From positions 186,001 through 250,000 of the forward strand of contig NW_003314388.1 of assembly GCF_000143415.4 (NCBI RefSeq): a stretch of 64,000 bases of DNA, read 5' to 3'. Under the pieces are notes generated by a model that was not told where the DNA came from, searched no databases, and saw only the letters and a list, made by a program, of their open reading frames with translations. The stretch comes from Selaginella moellendorffii (Eukaryota; Plantae; Lycopodiophyta). Shown one piece after another: positions 36,626 to 52,610 of this stretch. The position numbers and the translations under genes are program-made. Positions within the stretch are counted from its first letter, which is position 1, and each line of letters begins with the position of its first letter.

Positions 36626-39600
36626 ACTTGTATAACTACTTTAGGTTATGTCTCTCAAATCTTATGATTCAATTCTATCCCTTTACTATTTAGAAAAATG
36701 AGTGTAAATGGTTTATAAGAATGTGTAAAATTATAGTGGTGTAGCAGAACCATTGCAAAAATCACTTAACAACTCTAAAATTTACAACCACAAATGGATT
36801 TAAAGAATAATTATTTTAACACAAAGTCTCATACTTTTACAAATTGATATGAATTTACCACTAGTGTAGAATGAAAACCTCTAAAAACTTTGTGCATACC
36901 ATTCTATTGTGTAGATTAATTATTCTATGTGAGGCAATTAGTCATTCACCCGTATTGTAGTCTAATGAAAAGGAAAGACATATGTATGGAACGATTTTAA
37001 ATTTAGGGGAAAAAAAAGTAAAAATAATAAAATAAAAATAAAATATTTTTTTTAAGTAGCCACTAATCAATGGGAATTGAACCCGTGTCATTTACATGAT
37101 TTTGAAGCTTGCCATGTGGCGAGGAGGTTGGGGAGATAGTTCCTAAATATTCAAAGAGATGTTTTTGAATGAAAATTGATATTTAAGGACTTTCACACTT
37201 ATATATAGAACCATATTACATTGGTTGCATGACTTGCTAAGTGAGATTGGCAAGTAAAAGGAACAAAAGCCTTAGTTGAAAATAATGACTTCAAGAGGGT
37301 AACCATAGGGTCAAATATAGAGGAGTTTATGCATAATCATAAGTTAGTCAATTAGTTTGTCAAGTGAAGGATTTGGAAGCTCGGAGAAGCTAGATTCCTA
37401 ATCTATAATTTATAGCATGTGTTATATATAAGTTAGTGCACAGGTGTGAGGAGTTATGCTAAGCATTTTGGGTAATGCTATCCGTAGATATATATATAAA
37501 AGTTGGGTTTGAATCCCAACCCTTTAATGTTTGGGTTTGAGTCCCAATACACTAAGGCTGATGATAGTTTGGAATATAAGAACATTCATTTTTCAATGGT
37601 CATGGACTTTTAGTAAAGAAATTGGCTTGAGCACACCACCAAGTAGGTGATCCTATGGTTAAACAAGGACAAGCTTTTTGTTAGATTAAAGAATATAGTT
37701 CTTAGTTCAAAATAGTGATTTGAACAAATGGTGTGGTATGACTTAGTTAATATGATCAAATGGGAAAGACATCTAGGTGAGATATGATATGACAATACAA
37801 TGGTAATGTGAGTCTAGGAAAGTAGTCTCTAAGGAAGGACTTATAAGATGGTCATAAAATTAGGCTGTAGATAGAGCTTAGAATGGAAAATGCTAAAGAG
37901 ATTTATGAACGGTAAACACCCCTTAGACTTAACAAAATAAAGTTTTAACTCAAAAACCAAAAAGATACCCTAAGGATGAAAGTAGTGATTTTGTGTTATC
38001 TTATGCTAACAGGTTATATGAAAGGAAATATGTTTCTTAGGATTCCCAAATGCTCAAATTCGGCAAAATGCCAAAGCTAAGTGTTAGTAATATCAATGTC
38101 CCAACTACACACTTTTTCAATTCAACAATTTACTCCAAGTGGTAACAAATTAACTAATAAGTTATAATAAATGAATATTATAACATTTTGAAAAACCTTA
38201 ATGGGAAAACCCTCAAAGAACCAAGGTACCAACACTTAACTTAGAATAATAGATCACTTTTAAAACTTAGTCAAAACTACTATAATACTACTATATGCAA
38301 GTAAATTAGTTTCACCATCAATCACTTTAGGGTTTATCATTGTTTGACTAAACAACTTTATAAACACATTACTCACAATCACATAGATATGATATAGTAA
38401 TCACAATGACTTAATCATCAATTTAGCAACACCACTAGCTAGCCCACATTATTACTTCAAAGGTTTATGTGAATATCAAGTGCCATGTCCATTCAACAAA
38501 ATGCAACATAATTATCCCCATCAATAAAGATTTATAACACCTAACACTACTAACTTCATTCAAAATATAGACAAATCTATATTACTATTTTTCTAATTAA
38601 ACTCAAAACTAATCCAATACCAAACTACTCAAGGAGCAATAGTAAGTTTCCTTGAAAAAGAATTAGCCATTGTAACCCAAGCCTTCCAATAACAAACTTA
38701 AACAAAATGATTTAACACTTCACTACTATCCATCTCATGATTCATTACTTGTAAAATCATTATAACCAATATGCATCATAATAGAAACTCTCAATTGCAT
38801 GATGCAAATATTAGGTATGGAATATGGTATTCAAAATCCATACCCAAAGGATGAGTGGGTACATATTTGGTTGCTATAACTTCACATATGTCCCTTGAGT
38901 ATAGATTTTGGTTATTATGTTCTATATATATAGATTTTGGTTGATGAACTTCATTTTGGTTTAGTTAATCCAAGCAGTCTAAGCAACCATGAGTATAGAA
39001 TTTGGTTGATAAACATCATTTTGATTTGGCTGAATAGACACTTTCCTTATGCTTGTTTGGTTAAGTATAGATGCTAAATAAAGTTTACTAACATTTGAAC
39101 AAGGATAAAGGGTTTAGTAATATCAATTTTTTACCGTCATGGCAGTAAAGAAAGAATATCCAAAAGGATTAATTGATTTGATACTTGCAATCATATTCAC
39201 TTAAATTAAACTTAGTATCTATAATTGACTAAATGAGCATAAAAAAGAAATTTCTAAATGTTTATTTATCCAAACATGGTCCAGTTTGCTAGCTCTTTTT
39301 TGCTTTGTCTTATATTGACTTGACAACAACCCTTGCATATTAGGCATCACTACATGATAATTTACAATGTTTGCCAAATGTTTTCACTACCTTAATTATC
39401 TGAGAAAATTTCTCTGAGACTACTTGTTTTAGTTCCATAAGTTATTTATGGAAAGTGCTTAGATATGTGATTTGGCCATATTTATGGAATGTAAAGATTG
39501 TCTTAAATAAAATAGTGTTGTTCCCATATCCAAACTTAAATATATGGTAAACCATAAATGCTATGAAGCAATATAATCTAAATGAAAAGCATACTGAGCA

Positions 39601-39971
39601 AGAAGGCTTTTCTCTCCAACAACAACTGTTATAAATCTATTTGCATTCTTGTTAATTGAAAACAATCCTAACCTTGATCCAGTCCTGCCTTAGCAAAGTA
39701 AGAAATTAAATGTGATAACAAGCATTCCCCATGCTACTCTAACAAGATAAATGCTAGAGAGGCCTTTTTATATAGAAGACTACTAAAAGCACTCAAGCAC
39801 CAGTCCTGAATTTGACACACATTTAGAGGTGGTTCTTAATCAAGAGGATTCATATTAATCTTCCATAGGTGTCAACTTGGCTTCACTCTCACACCAAACA
39901 CTCTCTCTTGGGTGCGAAGCATGGACTTATATCTGACCTCTCAAGCATATATATCCTAGAAATTGGGATAT

Positions 39972-39977
<6 letters not shown>

Positions 39978-40003
<26 letters not shown>
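39978..40003. repeat. (CT)n microsatellite upstream of the MYB gene
   Basis: ctctctctct run. Confidence 0.9.
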
Positions 40004-40004
<1 letters not shown>

Positions 40005-40600
40005 AAATGCCACTACAATAGGTATGAAACAAAAGATATTCCTTGAATTTATATATATAAAAATAGCAATTAACAGAATGGTAGCAATTTGTAAGTTGCC
40101 AAAATTCCCGCACCGGATATCCATCCCGTATCTTACTGGCTAAGAAAACGCGGCTTCAGACAGCGCATATAGATCCCGTCGCATGTCATGCTGACTGGGA
40201 CGACACCAGTGCCCTAAACGATGATTGTTAGAAGTTGGTGGCTCTCCGCCATGATTGTGTATCAAAATAGCAACCAGCGGCAGCAGCACAGCAGCTTAGT
40301 ATGGAACACAACACAAATGCCAAGGCCTTCGTCCTACGTGGCAGCCCGGAGCCGCCGCCTGGTCCGAGCGGCACCAACGGGTATATTCGCCATTTAAAAA
40401 ACCAAATATATGCGTGTGTGCGATTTCAAAACCCAGCCCAGCCGTTACACAAGAGAGGAAAAAGAAGGGGAAAAAAATGGATCAATTGTTCTGACATATA
40501 CTGACGCTCGGTCTCCCGAGCCCTCCTTCCCTGACCTAAGCTCACTGCGATCGATCCATCGATTGAAAGTGATAGAGGAGAGGGGGCGCGCGCCCGCGCC

Positions 40601-42752
40601 ATGGGCAGCGAGAATTTCCTGCTCTTTGCGAGCGCGGCACAAAAGGCGCACCTCCTCGACATGCAGCTAGAGGAGAATGCAAAGTTCCGGGAGCAGCAGC
40701 AGCAGCAGCGGGACCAGCAGCAGCGGCTCATCCTAGATCACCACGTAGAGGCCGCGGATTTGAGAGCGCGCAACTGCAGTAGATCGAGCAGCGGCGGGAT
40801 CAGCAGCTCCAACAAGAAACGAAACATTATCAAGGGCCAGTGGACGCCGGAGGAAGACAGGTTTACTTGGAATTCCTTGATCCTCTTTCGCTTCCAAAGT
40901 TTTTTTCCCCCTTGCGAATTGGGAACTCACGATTTTTTCTTTTTTCCTTTCTTGTTGGTTTGTCTCAGGTTTCTAGGCGAGCTTGTTGCAAAGCACGGCT
41001 GCCAGAAATGGTCGCTTATAGCAACTTATCTTCCTGGGCGGATTGGAAAGCAGTGCCGAGAGAGATGGCACAATCACCTCAAGCCAGATATCAAGGTAAA
41101 CGAAGAACCTTAATCCATTTTCTCTTCCTCGTTTTCAGTAAAATCGACTATCTGTTGTTTGAGGAGAAAAGAAAGAAGCTTTTTGATGTTTGATGTTGAT
41201 GTTTGTTGAAGATGATATAAACTCATGCCTTGAAAATCGTGCTTCTCTTTCTTTTGGTCTGTGCTTTCAGAGAGACATCTGGAGGGAGGACGAAGAGCAG
41301 CTTCTCGTCTCGGCGCACAATCGGCTGGGAAACAAATGGGCAGATATCGCCAAGCTCATTCCTGGACGCACAGAAAACGCCATCAAAAACCACTGGAACG
41401 CAACCATGAGAAGAAAAGACCTCCGTCGCAAGCACAGAAAGCCCGCCGATGGCTCCGACACGCTCGAGGTGGTGCCGCGCTCCACAGTTCTCCGCGACTA
41501 TCAGCAGAGAATAAACTGCCAGCCCACCGGCGGCGGTAGCTCCGCCAAAAGATCCCGCCACCACCACCACCACCACCACCAGTCCCCTGGCAGTGGCGGC
41601 GGCGGCTCAGGATCCCTGAATCACCGCTCCAACAGATCCTCCAAAGCAGCAGCCAGTGCTAGCGCTTTGCCGCCGCCAACGAGCATGAGCATGAGCACCA
41701 CCGAAGTGGACCAGCTACTCCAGAGGATGATGGAGAGCGATGCTGCCGCGGCCGCCGCTAGTACCAGCACTGGTATCGCGGACATCATCTCCGCCGCTGC
41801 CGCCGCCGCCGCCGCCGCGTCGGACTTCCAGGACTATTCCACCGCCGCCAGCTTTGGGAGCTTGATCACGGGCAACGCGTTGCAGTCGTCGTGGGGAGAG
41901 GCCAGAGCTCTGCCAGGAAACTATAATCCTCAAGTCACAGTGTGGAGTGAAGGAGGAGGATTCACCTTGAGCGGCAGCGCAGGCGATGGCGCCGGTGGTG
42001 GTTGCGGAGGAGGATCAAACGGAGGATCACAACAACAGCACCAGTTTGATCTCCAGCAGCTTCCATGGCCCACTCCAGCGTCTACAAACACTGGCAACTT
42101 CTACGTCAGTAACCATCTTAACCAGATTAACAGTGGCAGCGGTAGCAGCGGGCGACGAGCGGCAGATGTTTTGTTCGTGGAACCTCATCACGTAGTAGTG
42201 GACGACGTCGATTGCTGCTGCCCGCCAGCATTAACTCCATGCAAGTGCCAGCGCTGTACAGTTCAGGGCCTGGCGGATCTTAGCAACGTTAGCAGCGTTT
42301 TGGGAGATCACGGCACGGCTAATCCAGCAGCCATGGAGGAGCAAGAGACTTATCATCCCAGCATGCTTCACCTGGACAACGATGATCAATTTTCTAGTTA
42401 CCTCTCGCAGCAACAGCAGCAGCAGCAGCAGCAGCAACACGTCGGTCATGACGAGCAATCGTTTTGGAGCAGCGAGCACGATTCGATCAACCGGCACCAG
42501 CAGCAGCAACAGCAGCAGCAAGAGCTGGATTTGATCGAGCTGGTGACGAGCTCCAGTCGGGAGTTTAATCTCAAGAAAGTGGCTGCCACTGTTGCTGCTA
42601 CTGACAATGACGATCACGATGATCGTAGCGAGGTTCTTGCCGCGGCTGACGATCAACTAAGTCACCACCACCACCACCACCACCACCACCACCAAGGTTC
42701 TTTAGTATTTTCTCCGGGCTTAGATCAAAATGCAATGACTTACCTTTACTAG
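40601..42752 (+). CDS. R2R3-MYB of the MYB98/MYB64/MYB119 (FGMYB-type) clade; exons 40601-40860, 40969-41095, 41271-42752
   Basis: [12 protein letters not shown]|[42 protein letters not shown]|[48 protein letters not shown]; downstream STVLRDY resembles the SLLQDY motif of this clade; long low-complexity C-terminus. Confidence 0.9.
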
Positions 42753-43425
42753 AATTGTTAGAAGATGAGCAACAAGATCGGCTCTTCTGCAGGGATTTGC
42801 TAGACGACTCGATATTCGATGATCATGCTTTCCAAAAAAAAATTGAGAATAATCTTTAACACTTGTTCTGAGCTAGCTTGCGACAGATATTGTTTGACAA
42901 GGAAGAAAGGAGTGGAAGAAAGAAAAAAATCTTAACAGCACTCTCTCATTCCAATCTTCTTACACACCCACACACCCACACACCCACAAACATTGATTGT
43001 TTGACAAGTAATAAGAAACAAACAAACAAAAGCACACACAAGGAAAGGAGGAGAAAAGAAAGGAAAGTGGAAGATAGGAAGAAAGAATAGAGCAATAGCA
43101 GTACGTCGTATGGTGGTGCCGAAGGAAAGAAAGAAGGCAACAAACGAATTAAAAGCGCTGCAAGTGCCGCAATATACAAACAAAGAGGGGAAAACGCGCA
43201 CGGCGTGGAGGGAAGCTTGAGGTACATGCACATCATCGCCATTGCGAGGAATCAATCAATCCAGAAAGAGAGGAAACCATTCCCCAAAAGCACGCTGACG
43301 CGATCCATTGAATTCTATCGATTCGATTCGTAGAAGGCGAACCCCTAAATCCATAAGCCCTAAAACATGAAATGGGCGGGAAAGGTGTTTAAAATTTGGG
43401 GCTCGTGATCCGCCCTAGAAATATT

Positions 43426-43986
43426 ATGGCGATGGAGAATGTAGGGCAGCAGGGCGGAGGTGGAGGCGCGGCGCCTGATTCCGTGTCCGCAGCGGGAGCT
43501 CGGCCTGGAGCTGCCGCTGCCGTTGAGGAGGATGCCGATCTGGACAACGATGCGGTGTCGGCTGAGGACGATCCGGATCCAGTTGCGGAGAAGCTGTCCG
43601 GTCTTGTTACCGGTAAGCGCTCCTCGAATTCGTGCGATTTTTTCTTTCTTACTTGATCTCCGATCTATCCATCTGTGTTTAATCAGGTGTGATCCAACAG
43701 ACGCAAACAGTCATGGAGGAGCTTCTTCCTGCCATAGCGTAAGACCGTTTAAGCTTTTTCTTCTACTTATAGGCTACTGACAGCTTCTTGTGTGGGCGCC
43801 GCGCAAACAAAAAAACTTTTGACTGGTCGTCCCAGGAACATAAATACAACCTACGTGGAAGTGACGGAGGAGTTCCAGCACGCAAGAGATTTCGCCGTGG
43901 CCAAGAAGGCACGGCTCGAGGAGGAGAAGGAGAAGTTCCAGCAAGCGGCCTGCAGCGTTCTGGACCTTCTCAGCGCGCTCAACTAA
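43426..43986 (+). CDS. Small 3-exon protein of unknown function (acidic N-terminus, C-terminal coiled coil)
   Basis: ATG 43426; GT-AG introns near 43613-43686 and 43739-43771; in-frame ...FAVAKKARLEEEKEKFQQAACSVLDLLSALN*. Confidence 0.7.
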
Positions 43987-44141
43987 CTTTTCTGGCTCGT
44001 GACTTGTAAGGACTATCTTCGATTTGAGCATTTAATAGCTAGTTGAATTCAATTTCGTTTGTGTGTTGCTGGTACAGAAAGGAATCAGAATCCTGGGCTG
44101 CTGTCAAGGAGTCCCACCGCGTTGAAAGTGTCTACGAGCTA

Positions 44142-46295
44142 CTACCAATAATCTCCACACGAACACACGCCGTCCTTGAAGTGGTGAAACCGGCTGGTAT
44201 CCCTCACAATAATCTGTCTTCCTACAATTTGGGAAATGAACTTGGTTGCAGCATGACAATCAGAGCACACGCGCAAGTTCTTGACAACTCTGAGAGTAGT
44301 TCCGGGAGGGGTGCTGATGATGCCAAGAGCCATTGCAAGCCTTTCCGAGTGGTAACCCAGTAGCTGGGCCTTCTTCTCCTCGTCCACGTCCCGCAGCACC
44401 ATCTTCGTGTCCGGGACGTATCCGGCCTCCTTGATCTCTCGGTGCAGCCTCTCAAGCTCGCTATATATTTCCAGCTTTCGAGGGTGGCTGACGTCGCTCA
44501 CCATGAACTCGTGAACTCTATTGTTGATCTCGATCCAGCTCCGGCCTGCGAACTTCTTAACGCCAGAGGACTTCATCTCGTTCCGGATTCGAGCAACGTC
44601 AGCTCTCCTACCTTTGGCAGCGTACACATTTGACAGCAGAACGCGGCCAGCAACATTCTCCGGCTCCAACTCAGACACTCTCTTGGCAGCCCTCTGGCTC
44701 CGCTCCAGATCTCCATTCATCTGGCAGGCACTCAGGAACGCAATCCAGCAGACAACGTCCGCCTCAAAGTCCTTATGCCGCAGCAGCAACTTCTCGGCCT
44801 CGCCAAGCCGGCCAGCTCGACCCAGAAGATCGACCAGGCAGCAGTAGTGGTCGCCCGCGGGTGGCACTCCAAAGTCCGGTCCCATGGAACAGAAGTGCTC
44901 CCAGGCCTGCTCGAGCTGACCGAGGTGGCTGCAAGCACTGAGAACGCTGAGGAAAGTCACTCTATTCGGCTCGGTGCCACCGTCGATGACCATCTCCTGG
45001 AAGAGCTCTATCGCCTCCTCGCCGACACCATTCTGTGCGTAGGCTCTTATCATCGCGGTCCAGGTGACGACGCTCCTCGTCCTCAGCGGGACACTCTCAA
45101 ACACCTCTCGGGCGAGCTCCAAGTTGCCGCACTTGCCATACATGGTGATGACAGCGTTGAGCAGCATCAAGCTCTGGGAGAACAGCGGTGAGCTCCGGAT
45201 ACGAGCGTGGATCCTCTTCCCGAGAGACAGGGTCCCGAGCACAGCGCACGAGTCGACAACCGAGATGAGAGTTATGTCGGACGGCTCCGCCCCCTCGAGA
45301 TCCATGCACTGGAACAGGTTGATGGCCTCGGCAGCGTTCCCGTTCTGGGCATAGGCGGCGATCATGGCTGTCCAGGAGACGCTCGTCCTCACCGGCATAG
45401 CGTCGAGAACTCTCCGGGCGTCGTCCACACGGCCACACTTCCCATACAGGTTGACGAGCGTGCCAGCGACGACGGTGCTGGAGCGGTCCAGTCCGATAGC
45501 AGCGGCTCTCTGGTGGAAGGCCACGCCGGAGCGGAGATCCATGGTGCTGGCACAGGCGTCCAGGAGGCTCACGTACGTCGGCAAGCCGAGCTTGATGCCT
45601 TCCAGATCCATCCTCCAGACGAGCTCGAGCGCCCGCGACGTCCTCCAGTTGTGGGCATAGGCGGAGATCATCGCGGTCCAGCAGACCACGTCCTTCTCTG
45701 GGCTGCGATCAAACGCCCGCTCGGCCTCCTCGATCTCGCGGCACCGGCCATACATGGTGATGAGGCTGCTCTCGACGTGGGAGTCAATCTCCAGCGCCTC
45801 GCTCGCGATCAGCTCGTTGAGCTTCCGCCCCAGCGCGAGGTTCCTGGCGGCGGTGCAGGCGAGCAGCGCGGTGCTGAGCGTCACTGCGTTGGGCCGGACG
45901 CCCTGCGAGCACATCCAGTGGAAGAGCGTGGCGGCGCCGCGCGGATGCCCGTTCTGGGCATACGCGGCCATGAGGATGTTCCACGAGTGGGCGTTGTGGA
46001 GGGTGATGCGGCCGAAGGCGAGCTGCGCGCCATGGAGGCTGCCGTGCTTGCTGTAAGCATCGACAAGGACATTCCCCAGGAAGGTGTTGCGATCCAGCTT
46101 CCGGGCCGCGATTTGGGCGTGGAGCTTCCTCACCTCGTCCAAGCCGCGGCATTGCCATAGCAGCGATGCGTAGTCGTTTATACTCACCGTGCGTGGCGAT
46201 GACGGTGGCGATGGTGGCGATGGCGGCGCCGCTGCCGGAATGGCGATCGCCCTCCATCCCGCCTTGTTCCTCTGGCATGTCTTGGCCAAAAGCAT
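44142..46295 (-). CDS. PLS-class PPR protein with E/E+ and DYW deaminase domain (organellar C-to-U editing factor)
   Basis: 717 aa single exon; PPR motifs; SWIEI, HSERLA, CSDCH, HHFKDGVCSCGDYW. Confidence 0.97.
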   Translation of the reverse strand: MLLAKTCQRNKAGWRAIAIPAAAPPSPPSPPSSPRTVSINDYASLLWQCRGLDEVRKLHAQIAARKLDRNTFLGNVLVDAYSKHGSLHGAQLAFGRITLHNAHSWNILMAAYAQNGHPRGAATLFHWMCSQGVRPNAVTLSTALLACTAARNLALGRKLNELIASEALEIDSHVESSLITMYGRCREIEEAERAFDRSPEKDVVCWTAMISAYAHNWRTSRALELVWRMDLEGIKLGLPTYVSLLDACASTMDLRSGVAFHQRAAAIGLDRSSTVVAGTLVNLYGKCGRVDDARRVLDAMPVRTSVSWTAMIAAYAQNGNAAEAINLFQCMDLEGAEPSDITLISVVDSCAVLGTLSLGKRIHARIRSSPLFSQSLMLLNAVITMYGKCGNLELAREVFESVPLRTRSVVTWTAMIRAYAQNGVGEEAIELFQEMVIDGGTEPNRVTFLSVLSACSHLGQLEQAWEHFCSMGPDFGVPPAGDHYCCLVDLLGRAGRLGEAEKLLLRHKDFEADVVCWIAFLSACQMNGDLERSQRAAKRVSELEPENVAGRVLLSNVYAAKGRRADVARIRNEMKSSGVKKFAGRSWIEINNRVHEFMVSDVSHPRKLEIYSELERLHREIKEAGYVPDTKMVLRDVDEEKKAQLLGYHSERLAMALGIISTPPGTTLRVVKNLRVCSDCHAATKFISQIVGRQIIVRDTSRFHHFKDGVCSCGDYW

Positions 46296-46302
46296 ATACC
46301 AT

Positions 46303-46565
46303 TCAGGGTTTAGGGTTTAAGATTTAACTAACCCTCTTTAGGGTTTCAAGAAAAGATATTTCCTTTCTGCTTTGCCCACCACCATTTTTAGATTATTTTA
46401 AAACTTAAAGATATTTCCTTTTTGCTTTGCCCAACACGTGGCCATTTTAGATTATTTTACGATTATCTTGAACCCTAAAGGGGATTGTTCCTTTAGTTAA
46501 AAGATTTAGATTATTTTACCATTATCTTGAACCCTAAAGGGGGTTGTTTCTTTAGTTAAAAGATA
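46303..46565. promoter_or_regulatory. Short bidirectional intergenic region with telo-boxes and tandem duplications
   Basis: tagggttt repeats at 46304-46346; aaagatatttcctt.tgctttgccca x2; tttagattattttac.attatcttgaaccctaaagggg..gtt.ctttagttaaaagat x2. Confidence 0.6.
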
Positions 46566-50345: not shown

Positions 50346-52610
50346 AGTAGCTCGTAAGATTCTTCGTTTTGCACTAATTGAGAACTCCCCCTTTTTGCCC
50401 TGTCTATATAAAACGGTGGTACTTAGCTCAAGTTTAGGGCTCATCGGTGATAAAGGGCTAGAGCAGTGATGGATGCCGCGTCTTGGGGTTTCGCGACCCT
50501 TCCACTCTGCCCATTGATCGGAGCTCCAGGTAGGCCGCTTCGCCTCTCTCCCCTCACCGAGACGTCGCCCTACTGGGCGCCACAGCGGCAGCTCGTGAAC
50601 AACGGCTACCCTCGCAAGGTAAGTTCGTTTAGGTAGGGCTTTTCTTTGCGTTAGGAGTAAGACAGATTTGGAAAGCGAAGCTGCTTGCAACGAGCTAAGA
50701 GGTATGCTAGAGGCGATCAAGAAATCGTGTTGAAACTCGCAACGCTTGAAGGAACTCTCAACGCGAAGGGACACTCACCGACGTGGACAACGCTGTTTGA
50801 GTACGAACAAAACTAACGACCAACGATACTTGGTTTTACGTTGCCAGGTTCGCGTGTGTTTCGATTTGTTCTAATTTCTTGTCATTGAGAAGCCAAGTGA
50901 CATGCTGGTGCTGCCCAACGACAATAGGAACTGAAAAACGCCATGTCACAGCGTGTGCCAAGAAGAAAACTGCTACTAGATTGGAGAGATTTTGTGTCAA
51001 CGTTTTGGAGAGATTGTCAGCGCTTTGAGTTGTGTTGTTGCTGCGTTCAACGCAAGACCTGCGAGCTGAGAAACAACGGCGATCTCAGAACTTCAATCCA
51101 GCTGAAAATGTACATGACAATGGTCCAACCTCAATGAAAACAACGATCATGATCCGTCGCTGATCCTTGACAGGCCCGGTCCACTCGCACCTCTCCACCT
51201 CGCAGGGTAAGTTCGTTCAGTTTTCTTTGTGTTAGCAATAAGCGAGTAAGACAACGAAACGAGAGATTTGCTGGAGACAAGAAATATGCTCTAGAATGAT
51301 CAACGATAAAAGAGAGGCTAGAAGCAATCAAGAATTTTTTGAAACTCTCAACGTTTGAAGACGCTCTTTCTTTTCGATTGAGATTGTCGACGGGGTATGC
51401 TCAACGCAAAAGGGAGCCAGTGACACAGTCAAGCTAAGATGATATGCTCAAACAACTCAAACAAGCAAAGTGCAAGACAACGGGCCAAGGAACTCTCAAC
51501 GCGAAGGGAAACTCACCGATGTGGACAACGCCGTGTGAATACGAACAAAACTGACGATCAACGATACTTAGTTTCACGTTGCCAGGTTTGCGTGTGTTTC
51601 GATTTGTTCTAATTTCTTGTCATGAAGGGTGCTGCTCAACGACGATAAGAACTGAAAAACGCCATGTTACAGCGTGTGCCAAGAAGAGAAATGCTACTAG
51701 ATTGGAGAGATTTTGTGTCAACGTTTTGGAGAGATTGTCAGCGCTTTGTTGCTGCGTTCAACGCAAGACCTGCAAGCTGAGAAACAACGTTGGGAAACTG
51801 CGATCTTCAGAACTTAAATCCAGCTGAAGTTCTACCTGACAATGGTCCAACCTCAATGAAAACAACGATCAGGGCCGGTCAAGGATCAGCGACGGATCAA
51901 GTCCACTCTCGCCTCACAAGGTAAGTTCGTTTAATAAGCGAGTAAGACAACGAAACAAGAGAGATTTGCTGGAGACAAGAAATATGCTCTAGAATGATCA
52001 ACGATAAAAGAGGGGCTAGAAGCAATCAAGAATTTGTTGAAACTCTCAACGTTTGAAGACGCTCTTTCTTTTCGATTCAGATTGTCGACGGGGTATGCTC
52101 AACGCAAAAGGGAGCCAGTGACACAGTCAAGCTAAGATGATATGCTCAAACAACTTAAACAAGCTAAGCGCAAAACAACGGTCCAAGAAACTTTCAACGG
52201 GAAGGGAAACTTGTGAATACGAACAAATTAACGATCATTGAAAGTTGACATACTTAGCTTCATGTTGTCAGGTTTGTGTGTGTTTCAATTTGTTCTAATT
52301 TCTTGTCATGAAAAAGACAAGTGACATGTTGGTGCTGCTCAACCACGAGAACTAAAAAACGCTGTGTCTAAGAAGAAAAATGCTACGAGATTGGAGAGAT
52401 TCTATGTCAACATTTGGACAGATTGTCAGCAATGCGCTCAACGCAAGACCTGCGAGCTGAGAAACAACGTTGGACATCTGCGACTTCAGAACTTACATGA
52501 CAATGGTCCAACCTCAATGAAAACAACGATCATGAAAACTCCGGCTGTTCAAGGATATGGAAGTCGAAGTTTGACAGGTGCTTGTTCTAACCAAAATGCT
52601 TGTTCAACGA
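50346..52610. repeat. Inverted copy of the ARF downstream region plus ~3 tandem ~680-710-bp repeat units
   Basis: gctgagaaacaacg at 51065, 51776, 52456; reverse complement of ~140-1670. Confidence 0.85.

Follow-up and report, generated by a model that had tools for sequence, protein, structure and literature searches.

In the liverwort Marchantia, FGMYB is accompanied by an antisense lncRNA, SUF (Mp1g17200), whose expression extends to sporophytes and vegetative male thalli, and BPCU binds GAGA motifs that are enriched in the SUF promoter (PMC8699743). SUF is retained in Ricciocarpos and a putative SUF has been seen in Blasia; in hornworts, FGMYB has been treated as a sex-chromosome gene, and an antisense transcript is not mentioned. 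Within the literature that we found, reports of SUF come so far from liverworts only, a SUF of lycophytes is not mentioned (a search by accession returned no paper either), and no antisense control has been described for MYB98, MYB64 and MYB119 of Arabidopsis. More generally, an antisense transcript is present for about 5-7% of Selaginella genes (PMC5310277), and bidirectional initiation regions make up only about 4.7% in plants, with Selaginella among the sampled species (PMC11335568).

Our analysis concerns a MYB gene of the heterosporous lycophyte Selaginella moellendorffii, for which a preliminary description had proposed that a bidirectional promoter drives a spliced, SUF-like antisense RNA through the gene, possibly as a mega-/microspore fate switch. 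We put the probability at roughly 80% that the locus is an ordinary annotated FGMYB ortholog followed by a short 3′ UTR and a purine-rich spacer, and that the motifs of the apparent antisense exon are paired by chance. The window, that is, the whole 64-kb stretch of DNA that was analysed, belongs to GL377692.1 (GCA_000143415.2; JGI scaffold_127), with window positions equal to record positions minus 186,000, and window 42500-43500 is 100% identical to this record. The correspondence of GL377692.1 to JGI scaffold_127 follows from a published table, in which XP_002992014, XP_002992020, XP_002992029 and XP_002992031 are placed along scaffold_127 and bracket XP_002992026, the MYB protein.

The MYB locus (GL377692.1:226,601-228,822, with an allele on GL377569.1) is encoded on the plus strand. 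Exon 1 (40601-40860, ending ...GAAGACAG|gt) holds the N-terminal region and the start of R2, and its translation is identical to residues 1-86 of the RefSeq protein XP_002992026.2 (554 aa, annotated as 'myb-related protein B'). The remainder of R2 is supplied by exon 2 (40969-41095; PF00249, E = 3e-13). Exon 3 (41271-42752), an uninterrupted ORF, contains R3 (PF00249, E = 2e-15), a post-MYB motif (41406-41507) followed by a long low-complexity tail, the motif ELDLIELV (42522-42545) and the stop codon TAG (42750-42752). The exons were translated and searched singly, and whole-protein comparisons used the database entry XP_002992026.2, which carries two Myb stretches according to Pfam and hence has the R2R3 architecture.

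Judged by its sequence, the gene is a true member of the FGMYB clade and the Selaginella ortholog of FGMYB (MYB98/64/119 lineage), and it is already annotated. The clade assignment made in the preliminary description is upheld by domain identity to MpFGMYB, by a common post-MYB motif and by placement in a tree. Counting by hand between XP_002992026.2 and the 112-residue domains that Hisanaga et al. 2019 (PMC6418429) provide as source data, we found 95/112 identical residues (85%) with MpFGMYB and 76/112 (68%) with AtMYB119, compared with 60/112 (54%) for MpR2R3-MYB15, the next Marchantia MYB in that set. A C-terminal extension of the domain by 15 residues is identical to that of MpFGMYB, and the 15 residues after it match two Physcomitrella FGMYBs; the post-R3 extension, including LEVVPRxTxLRDYQQ, is common to the FGMYBs of Selaginella, Marchantia and Physcomitrella and is also present in three other database proteins. 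The named top-scoring seed-plant matches of a word search were all MYB119, MYB64 or MYB98, with a MYB44-like protein of Tripterygium as the one exception. A domain-restricted protein search was dominated by animal c-Myb, and published domains were compared by eye instead. Finally, a maximum-likelihood tree of 38 domains, from which other plant R2R3 clades are absent (a gap partly filled by the hand comparison with Marchantia paralogs), paired Diphasiastrum O6H91_11G044000 and the Selaginella protein as sisters (support 97/88) and placed this pair inside a 25-row clade (91/94) together with moss FGMYB-like proteins and seed-plant proteins named MYB98/64/119, separate from plant 3R-MYB-like and animal Myb proteins. 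By homology, the Selaginella FGMYB most likely binds DNA via its R2R3 domain and most likely has a role in developing female gametophytes or archegonia, and it is a sensible target for expression or knock-down work on megagametophyte development.

The allelic region on GL377569.1 (JGI scaffold_4) was found via the neighbour gene. The two haplotypes have the same gene order and are 98.2% identical over window 39975-46400, a divergence of 1.8% that is too shallow for testing 8-nt motifs; that the proposed antisense splice motifs are the same in both is uninformative at this divergence. In the allele, the MYB ORF is intact with all indels in frame and ends at the same TAG. Selaginella thus has one intact FGMYB ortholog, which is kept in both alleles and has a known address. 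Comparison of the haplotypes over 40000-44100 revealed 4 SNPs and 3 indels (1, 8 and 11 nt) in the 673-nt spacer downstream of the MYB gene and 7 SNPs in the MYB exons (~1870 nt), so the spacer shows no special conservation. The 8- and 11-nt indels both fall in its purine-rich part (42895-43330).

The annotation itself offers a different 3′ end of the gene. XP_002992026.2 differs from the plain ORF solely by two extra plus-strand introns, one at 41536-41649, which is in frame and takes out a His/Gly-rich stretch, and one at 42633-42792 (donor GAG|GTTCTT, acceptor ttctgCAG|GG). If the RefSeq structure were true, the sense mRNA would be spliced from 42632 to 42793 and the real stop would be TGA at 42820-42822; the stretch with the 43-nt 'exon' of the preliminary description would then lie inside a sense intron, and the TAG that it overlaps would not be the stop codon. 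The C-terminus of the RefSeq protein, GFARRLDIR, does map to 42793-42819, the plus-strand acceptor is preceded by 9/12 pyrimidines, and a small last exon follows the large exon of the Diphasiastrum ortholog too. However, the donor of this intron is weak, the unspliced ORF is open to the same TAG in both haplotypes, and the other RefSeq-only intron has no GT in the allele, where it is abolished by a T>C difference at 41537. Moreover, for the intact GL377569.1 allele, RefSeq models no more than a 58-aa fragment, and this suggests that transcripts back neither of the two RefSeq models. Taken together, we regard the RefSeq structure of the 3′ end as possible but rather doubtful.

In the preferred reading of an FGMYB ortholog that ends at the TAG, the stop codon is followed by ~140 nt of AT-rich sequence and then by a unique purine-rich spacer of ~440 nt, which is length-polymorphic between haplotypes. 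The AT-rich stretch (42753-42894 on the plus strand; 142 nt, A 32%, T 31%) is probably the short 3′ UTR of the MYB gene. The low-complexity intergenic tract behind it (42895-43330; A 42%, G 23%, C 20%, T 15%) has two length-polymorphic microsatellites, (ACACACCC)3.4 at 42962-42988 and (AAAC)3.8 at 43016-43030. The preliminary description had stressed that the sequence after the stop (42800-43330) is A/G-rich. This skew is real, but it begins only ~140 nt past the stop and is not exceptional: purines make up 61.8% of 42800-43330 and as much as 71% only in the core (43004-43303), and the 64 kb hold about 20 non-overlapping windows of 300 nt with an equal strand skew in one direction or the other. 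Since the first 142 nt are ordinary and could hold the entire 3′ UTR, the purine tract need not be part of a 3′ UTR at all. When examined as a candidate repeat or transposon, the tract turned out to occur a single time in the window, and this origin was rejected; an Rfam scan of the region returned no family above threshold.

Immediately downstream of the tract comes a gene on the plus strand, whose promoter or 5′ leader is therefore the simplest reading of the tract. The gene starts 670 nt downstream of the MYB gene with an ATG that is present at 43426, in agreement with the preliminary description, and corresponds to LOC112342998 (43426-43986; 129 aa in three coding exons, no Pfam family), for which RefSeq holds two transcript accessions and one protein. 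The tract at 42895-43330 probably provides LOC112342998 with its promoter or 5′ leader, and the purine-rich spacer would hold these elements. We also observed a near-palindromic TTTAAAAT at 43387-43394, which, with the tandem gene 670 nt downstream, would allow divergent initiation.

The antisense exon of the preliminary description is built from letters that are indeed present. On the minus strand, the donor is the octamer AGGTAAGT (AG|GTAAGT) at 42738-42745, reading ACTTACCT on the plus strand, and the acceptor is CCCTGCAG at 42787-42794, reading CTGCAGGG on the plus strand; the two motifs bound 43 nt (42744-42786) that cover the TAG. Nevertheless, the frequency of the donor octamer is at chance level, the acceptor is weak and palindromic and is better on the plus strand, and nothing indicates that the exon is real. 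The octamer has 6 copies in the 64-kb window, with 1.0 per strand per 64 kb expected under a first-order Markov model. Five of these belong to one dispersed repeat (+50617, +51919, -1452, -796 and -42, in the context ...CTCGCAAG|GTAAGTTCGTTTAG...), and the copy at 42745 is the only one in the window outside this family. The chance of finding a perfect AGGTAAGT in a given 700-nt single-strand stretch is 0.027, and that of a 7/8 match is 0.13, both before allowing for the post hoc choice of any gene end in 64 kb. The minus-strand acceptor at 42787 has 6/12 pyrimidines upstream, and YAG acceptors of at least its quality occur at 15 per kb per strand. Its core is the palindrome CTGCAG (42787-42792), which also forms the RefSeq plus-strand acceptor of the intron at 42633-42792 and has 9/12 pyrimidines upstream on that strand compared with 6/12 on the minus strand; from its flanks, it fits a sense-strand acceptor better than an antisense acceptor. 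Furthermore, of the donors in the window with at least 7/8 positions of AGGTAAGT, all (34/34) have such an acceptor 20-300 nt upstream, so that the 'exon' carries no information in addition to the octamer. The proposed splice sites thus give no signal of an antisense unit above chance, and the 'antisense exon' would reflect a coincidence between one AGGTAAGT octamer and a weak AG in the palindromic CTGCAG.

These observations bear directly on the proposal that a SUF-like, cis-acting antisense lncRNA starts from or near the downstream promoter on the minus strand, runs through the purine tract, is spliced at 42787 and 42743, and silences FGMYB by transcribing into its 3′ part. In its favour, the gene in question is a true FGMYB ortholog, FGMYB is under SUF-type control in Marchantia and apparently in Blasia, a promoter lies ~670 nt downstream of the MYB gene, and a perfect minus-strand donor octamer, with a chance of ~3% in a given 700-nt stretch, sits at the stop codon. 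However, apart from the chance level of the splice motifs, plant promoters, including those of Selaginella, mostly initiate one way (PMC11335568), the spacer carries no extra conservation between haplotypes, and SUF has been reported so far in liverworts alone. The tract also differs from the SUF promoter in its motif content. GAGA occurs there at 0.7 times the window density (2 copies vs 3.9 in shuffles), GAGAG and GAGAGA at 1.3-1.5 times, and RGARAGRRA is observed 5 times with 2.0 expected from the 59 all-purine 9-mers of the tract; from these counts, there is no clear GAGA signature, and the tract lacks the GAGA enrichment of a SUF-type promoter.

Published RNA data point in the same direction. 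Strand-specific RNA-seq of root, stem and leaf yielded a list of 1,665 antisense transcripts (Zhu et al. 2017, PMC5310277, Additional file 5), and none of these (0/1,665; root, stem and leaf only) is located at the MYB locus on scaffold_127. The five antisense entries on scaffold_127 are all directed against gene 430314 at 328-353 kb, outside the merged locus of the MYB gene. The Cufflinks locus into which the MYB allele on scaffold_4 was merged spans 462 kb and contains three antisense transcripts; they run opposite to JGI genes 405806 and 405839, which we estimate by gene-number interpolation to lie ~120-275 kb from the allele. Since the Marchantia SUF is on in sporophytes and in vegetative male thalli, a faithful analogue should show in root, stem or leaf, and its absence from this list counts moderately against a SUF-like RNA, although one restricted to strobili, sporangia or gametophytes would escape a list of this scope. 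Exact look-ups of XP_002992026.2, the LOC112342998 protein and a minus-strand ORF from the tract in public run assemblies returned the reference genome only, or nothing.

Overall, the sequence itself gives no sign of antisense control. The bidirectional promoter with its spliced SUF-like RNA is left unsupported by chance-level motifs, by the lack of GAGA enrichment and by the lack of haplotype constraint, and we consider such an RNA very unlikely. The same applies to the mega-/microspore fate switch, towards which nothing in the sequence points, the splice motifs being at chance level; this sex-switch reading is likewise very improbable. The extended version, in which a heterosporous lycophyte keeps a SUF-like unit that starts in the shared spacer and prevents FGMYB expression in the sporophyte and in cells derived from microspores, appears highly improbable. 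If it were true, however, the sense/antisense toggle would be placed at the base of land plants instead of in liverworts alone, and a SUF-like RNA in Selaginella would link the control of gametophyte sex in liverworts to mega-/microspore fate in vascular plants. Lastly, the purine tract could act, with no antisense RNA, as a silencer (Polycomb response element) of the MYB gene or its neighbour bound by BPC/GAGA factors, given that the FGMYB locus in Marchantia is under BPC protein control (PMC8699743) and that the 5 matches to the degenerate BPC consensus RGARAGRRA amount to 11 times the window density, but the all-purine composition leaves these matches without clear excess, strict GAGA, GAGAG and GAGAGA are not enriched and the tract is indel-polymorphic between haplotypes, which makes this role highly unlikely.

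Among the proteins found, the closest relative of the Selaginella FGMYB is Diphasiastrum complanatum O6H91_11G044000 (KAJ7538336; 86% identity over 116 residues), and the two have the motif ELDLI(E/D)LV in common. The Diphasiastrum protein carries, in the same exon, a MoaE-like C-terminal domain (PF02391, 42 bits) that the Selaginella gene lacks, and a search of the window, including the purine tract as a possible degenerate exon, found no remnant of this domain. MYB98, MYB64 and MYB119 of Arabidopsis belong to the same clade, with MYB domains that are ~65-69% identical to that of Selaginella; the seed-plant MYB98/64/119 proteins lack the post-MYB motif LEVVPRxTxLRDYQQ of bryophytes and lycophytes, and the C-terminal ELDLIELV of Selaginella is not evident in them. 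In Marchantia, experiments have defined SUF as a transcription unit that possesses a start site of its own, a GAGA-rich, BPCU-bound promoter and a poly(A) site, whereas the Selaginella locus offers no known transcript, a tract in which GAGA is not enriched and only two chance-level motifs. The likeness to Marchantia lies in the sense gene: FGMYB of Marchantia polymorpha (Mp1g17210, Mapoly0001s0061) is the orthologous gene, with an 85% identical domain and an identical 15-residue extension.

The MYB is also intact on the other haplotype, GL377569.1, whose allelic region (L002) carries the complete ORF at L002:7214-9440, despite a RefSeq model of only 58 aa (L002:7661-8009). One intron present only in the RefSeq model has no GT in this allele, owing to a T>C change at window position 41537. 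Haplotype identity drops from 98.2% to 91–95% some 600 bp ahead of the ATG of the MYB (window 38000-40004 versus L002:4535-6579) and, because of this drop, the two alleles may differ in the distal promoter of the MYB. Downstream, both haplotypes share the gene order MYB, 129-aa gene, PPR and tetraspanin, in which the intronless DYW-type PPR gene (window 44142-46295, minus strand; 717-aa ORF ending in DYW) precedes the tetraspanin gene.

The 64-kb window holds six AGGTAAGT octamers, the motif proposed in the preliminary description as a minus-strand antisense donor, and five of them are copies within one dispersed repeat containing ...CTCGCAAG|GTAAGTTCGTTTAG..., which lies on the plus strand at 50500-50750 and 51190-52060 and in inverted copies at 2-49, 656-742 and 1314-1461. 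This repeat may represent a transposon or the exon/intron border of a gene family.

A MoaE-like C-terminal domain (PF02391) is present in the FGMYB-like proteins P0003 from Diphasiastrum (42 bits), P0092 (27 bits) and P0002 (moss). No remnant of this domain was found in the 64-kb window. The Selaginella MYB, without a MoaE-like domain, differs from the Diphasiastrum FGMYB-like protein, at whose locus (L004:9737-12060, CM055102.1) one exon codes for both the MoaE-like domain and the ELDLIDLV motif.
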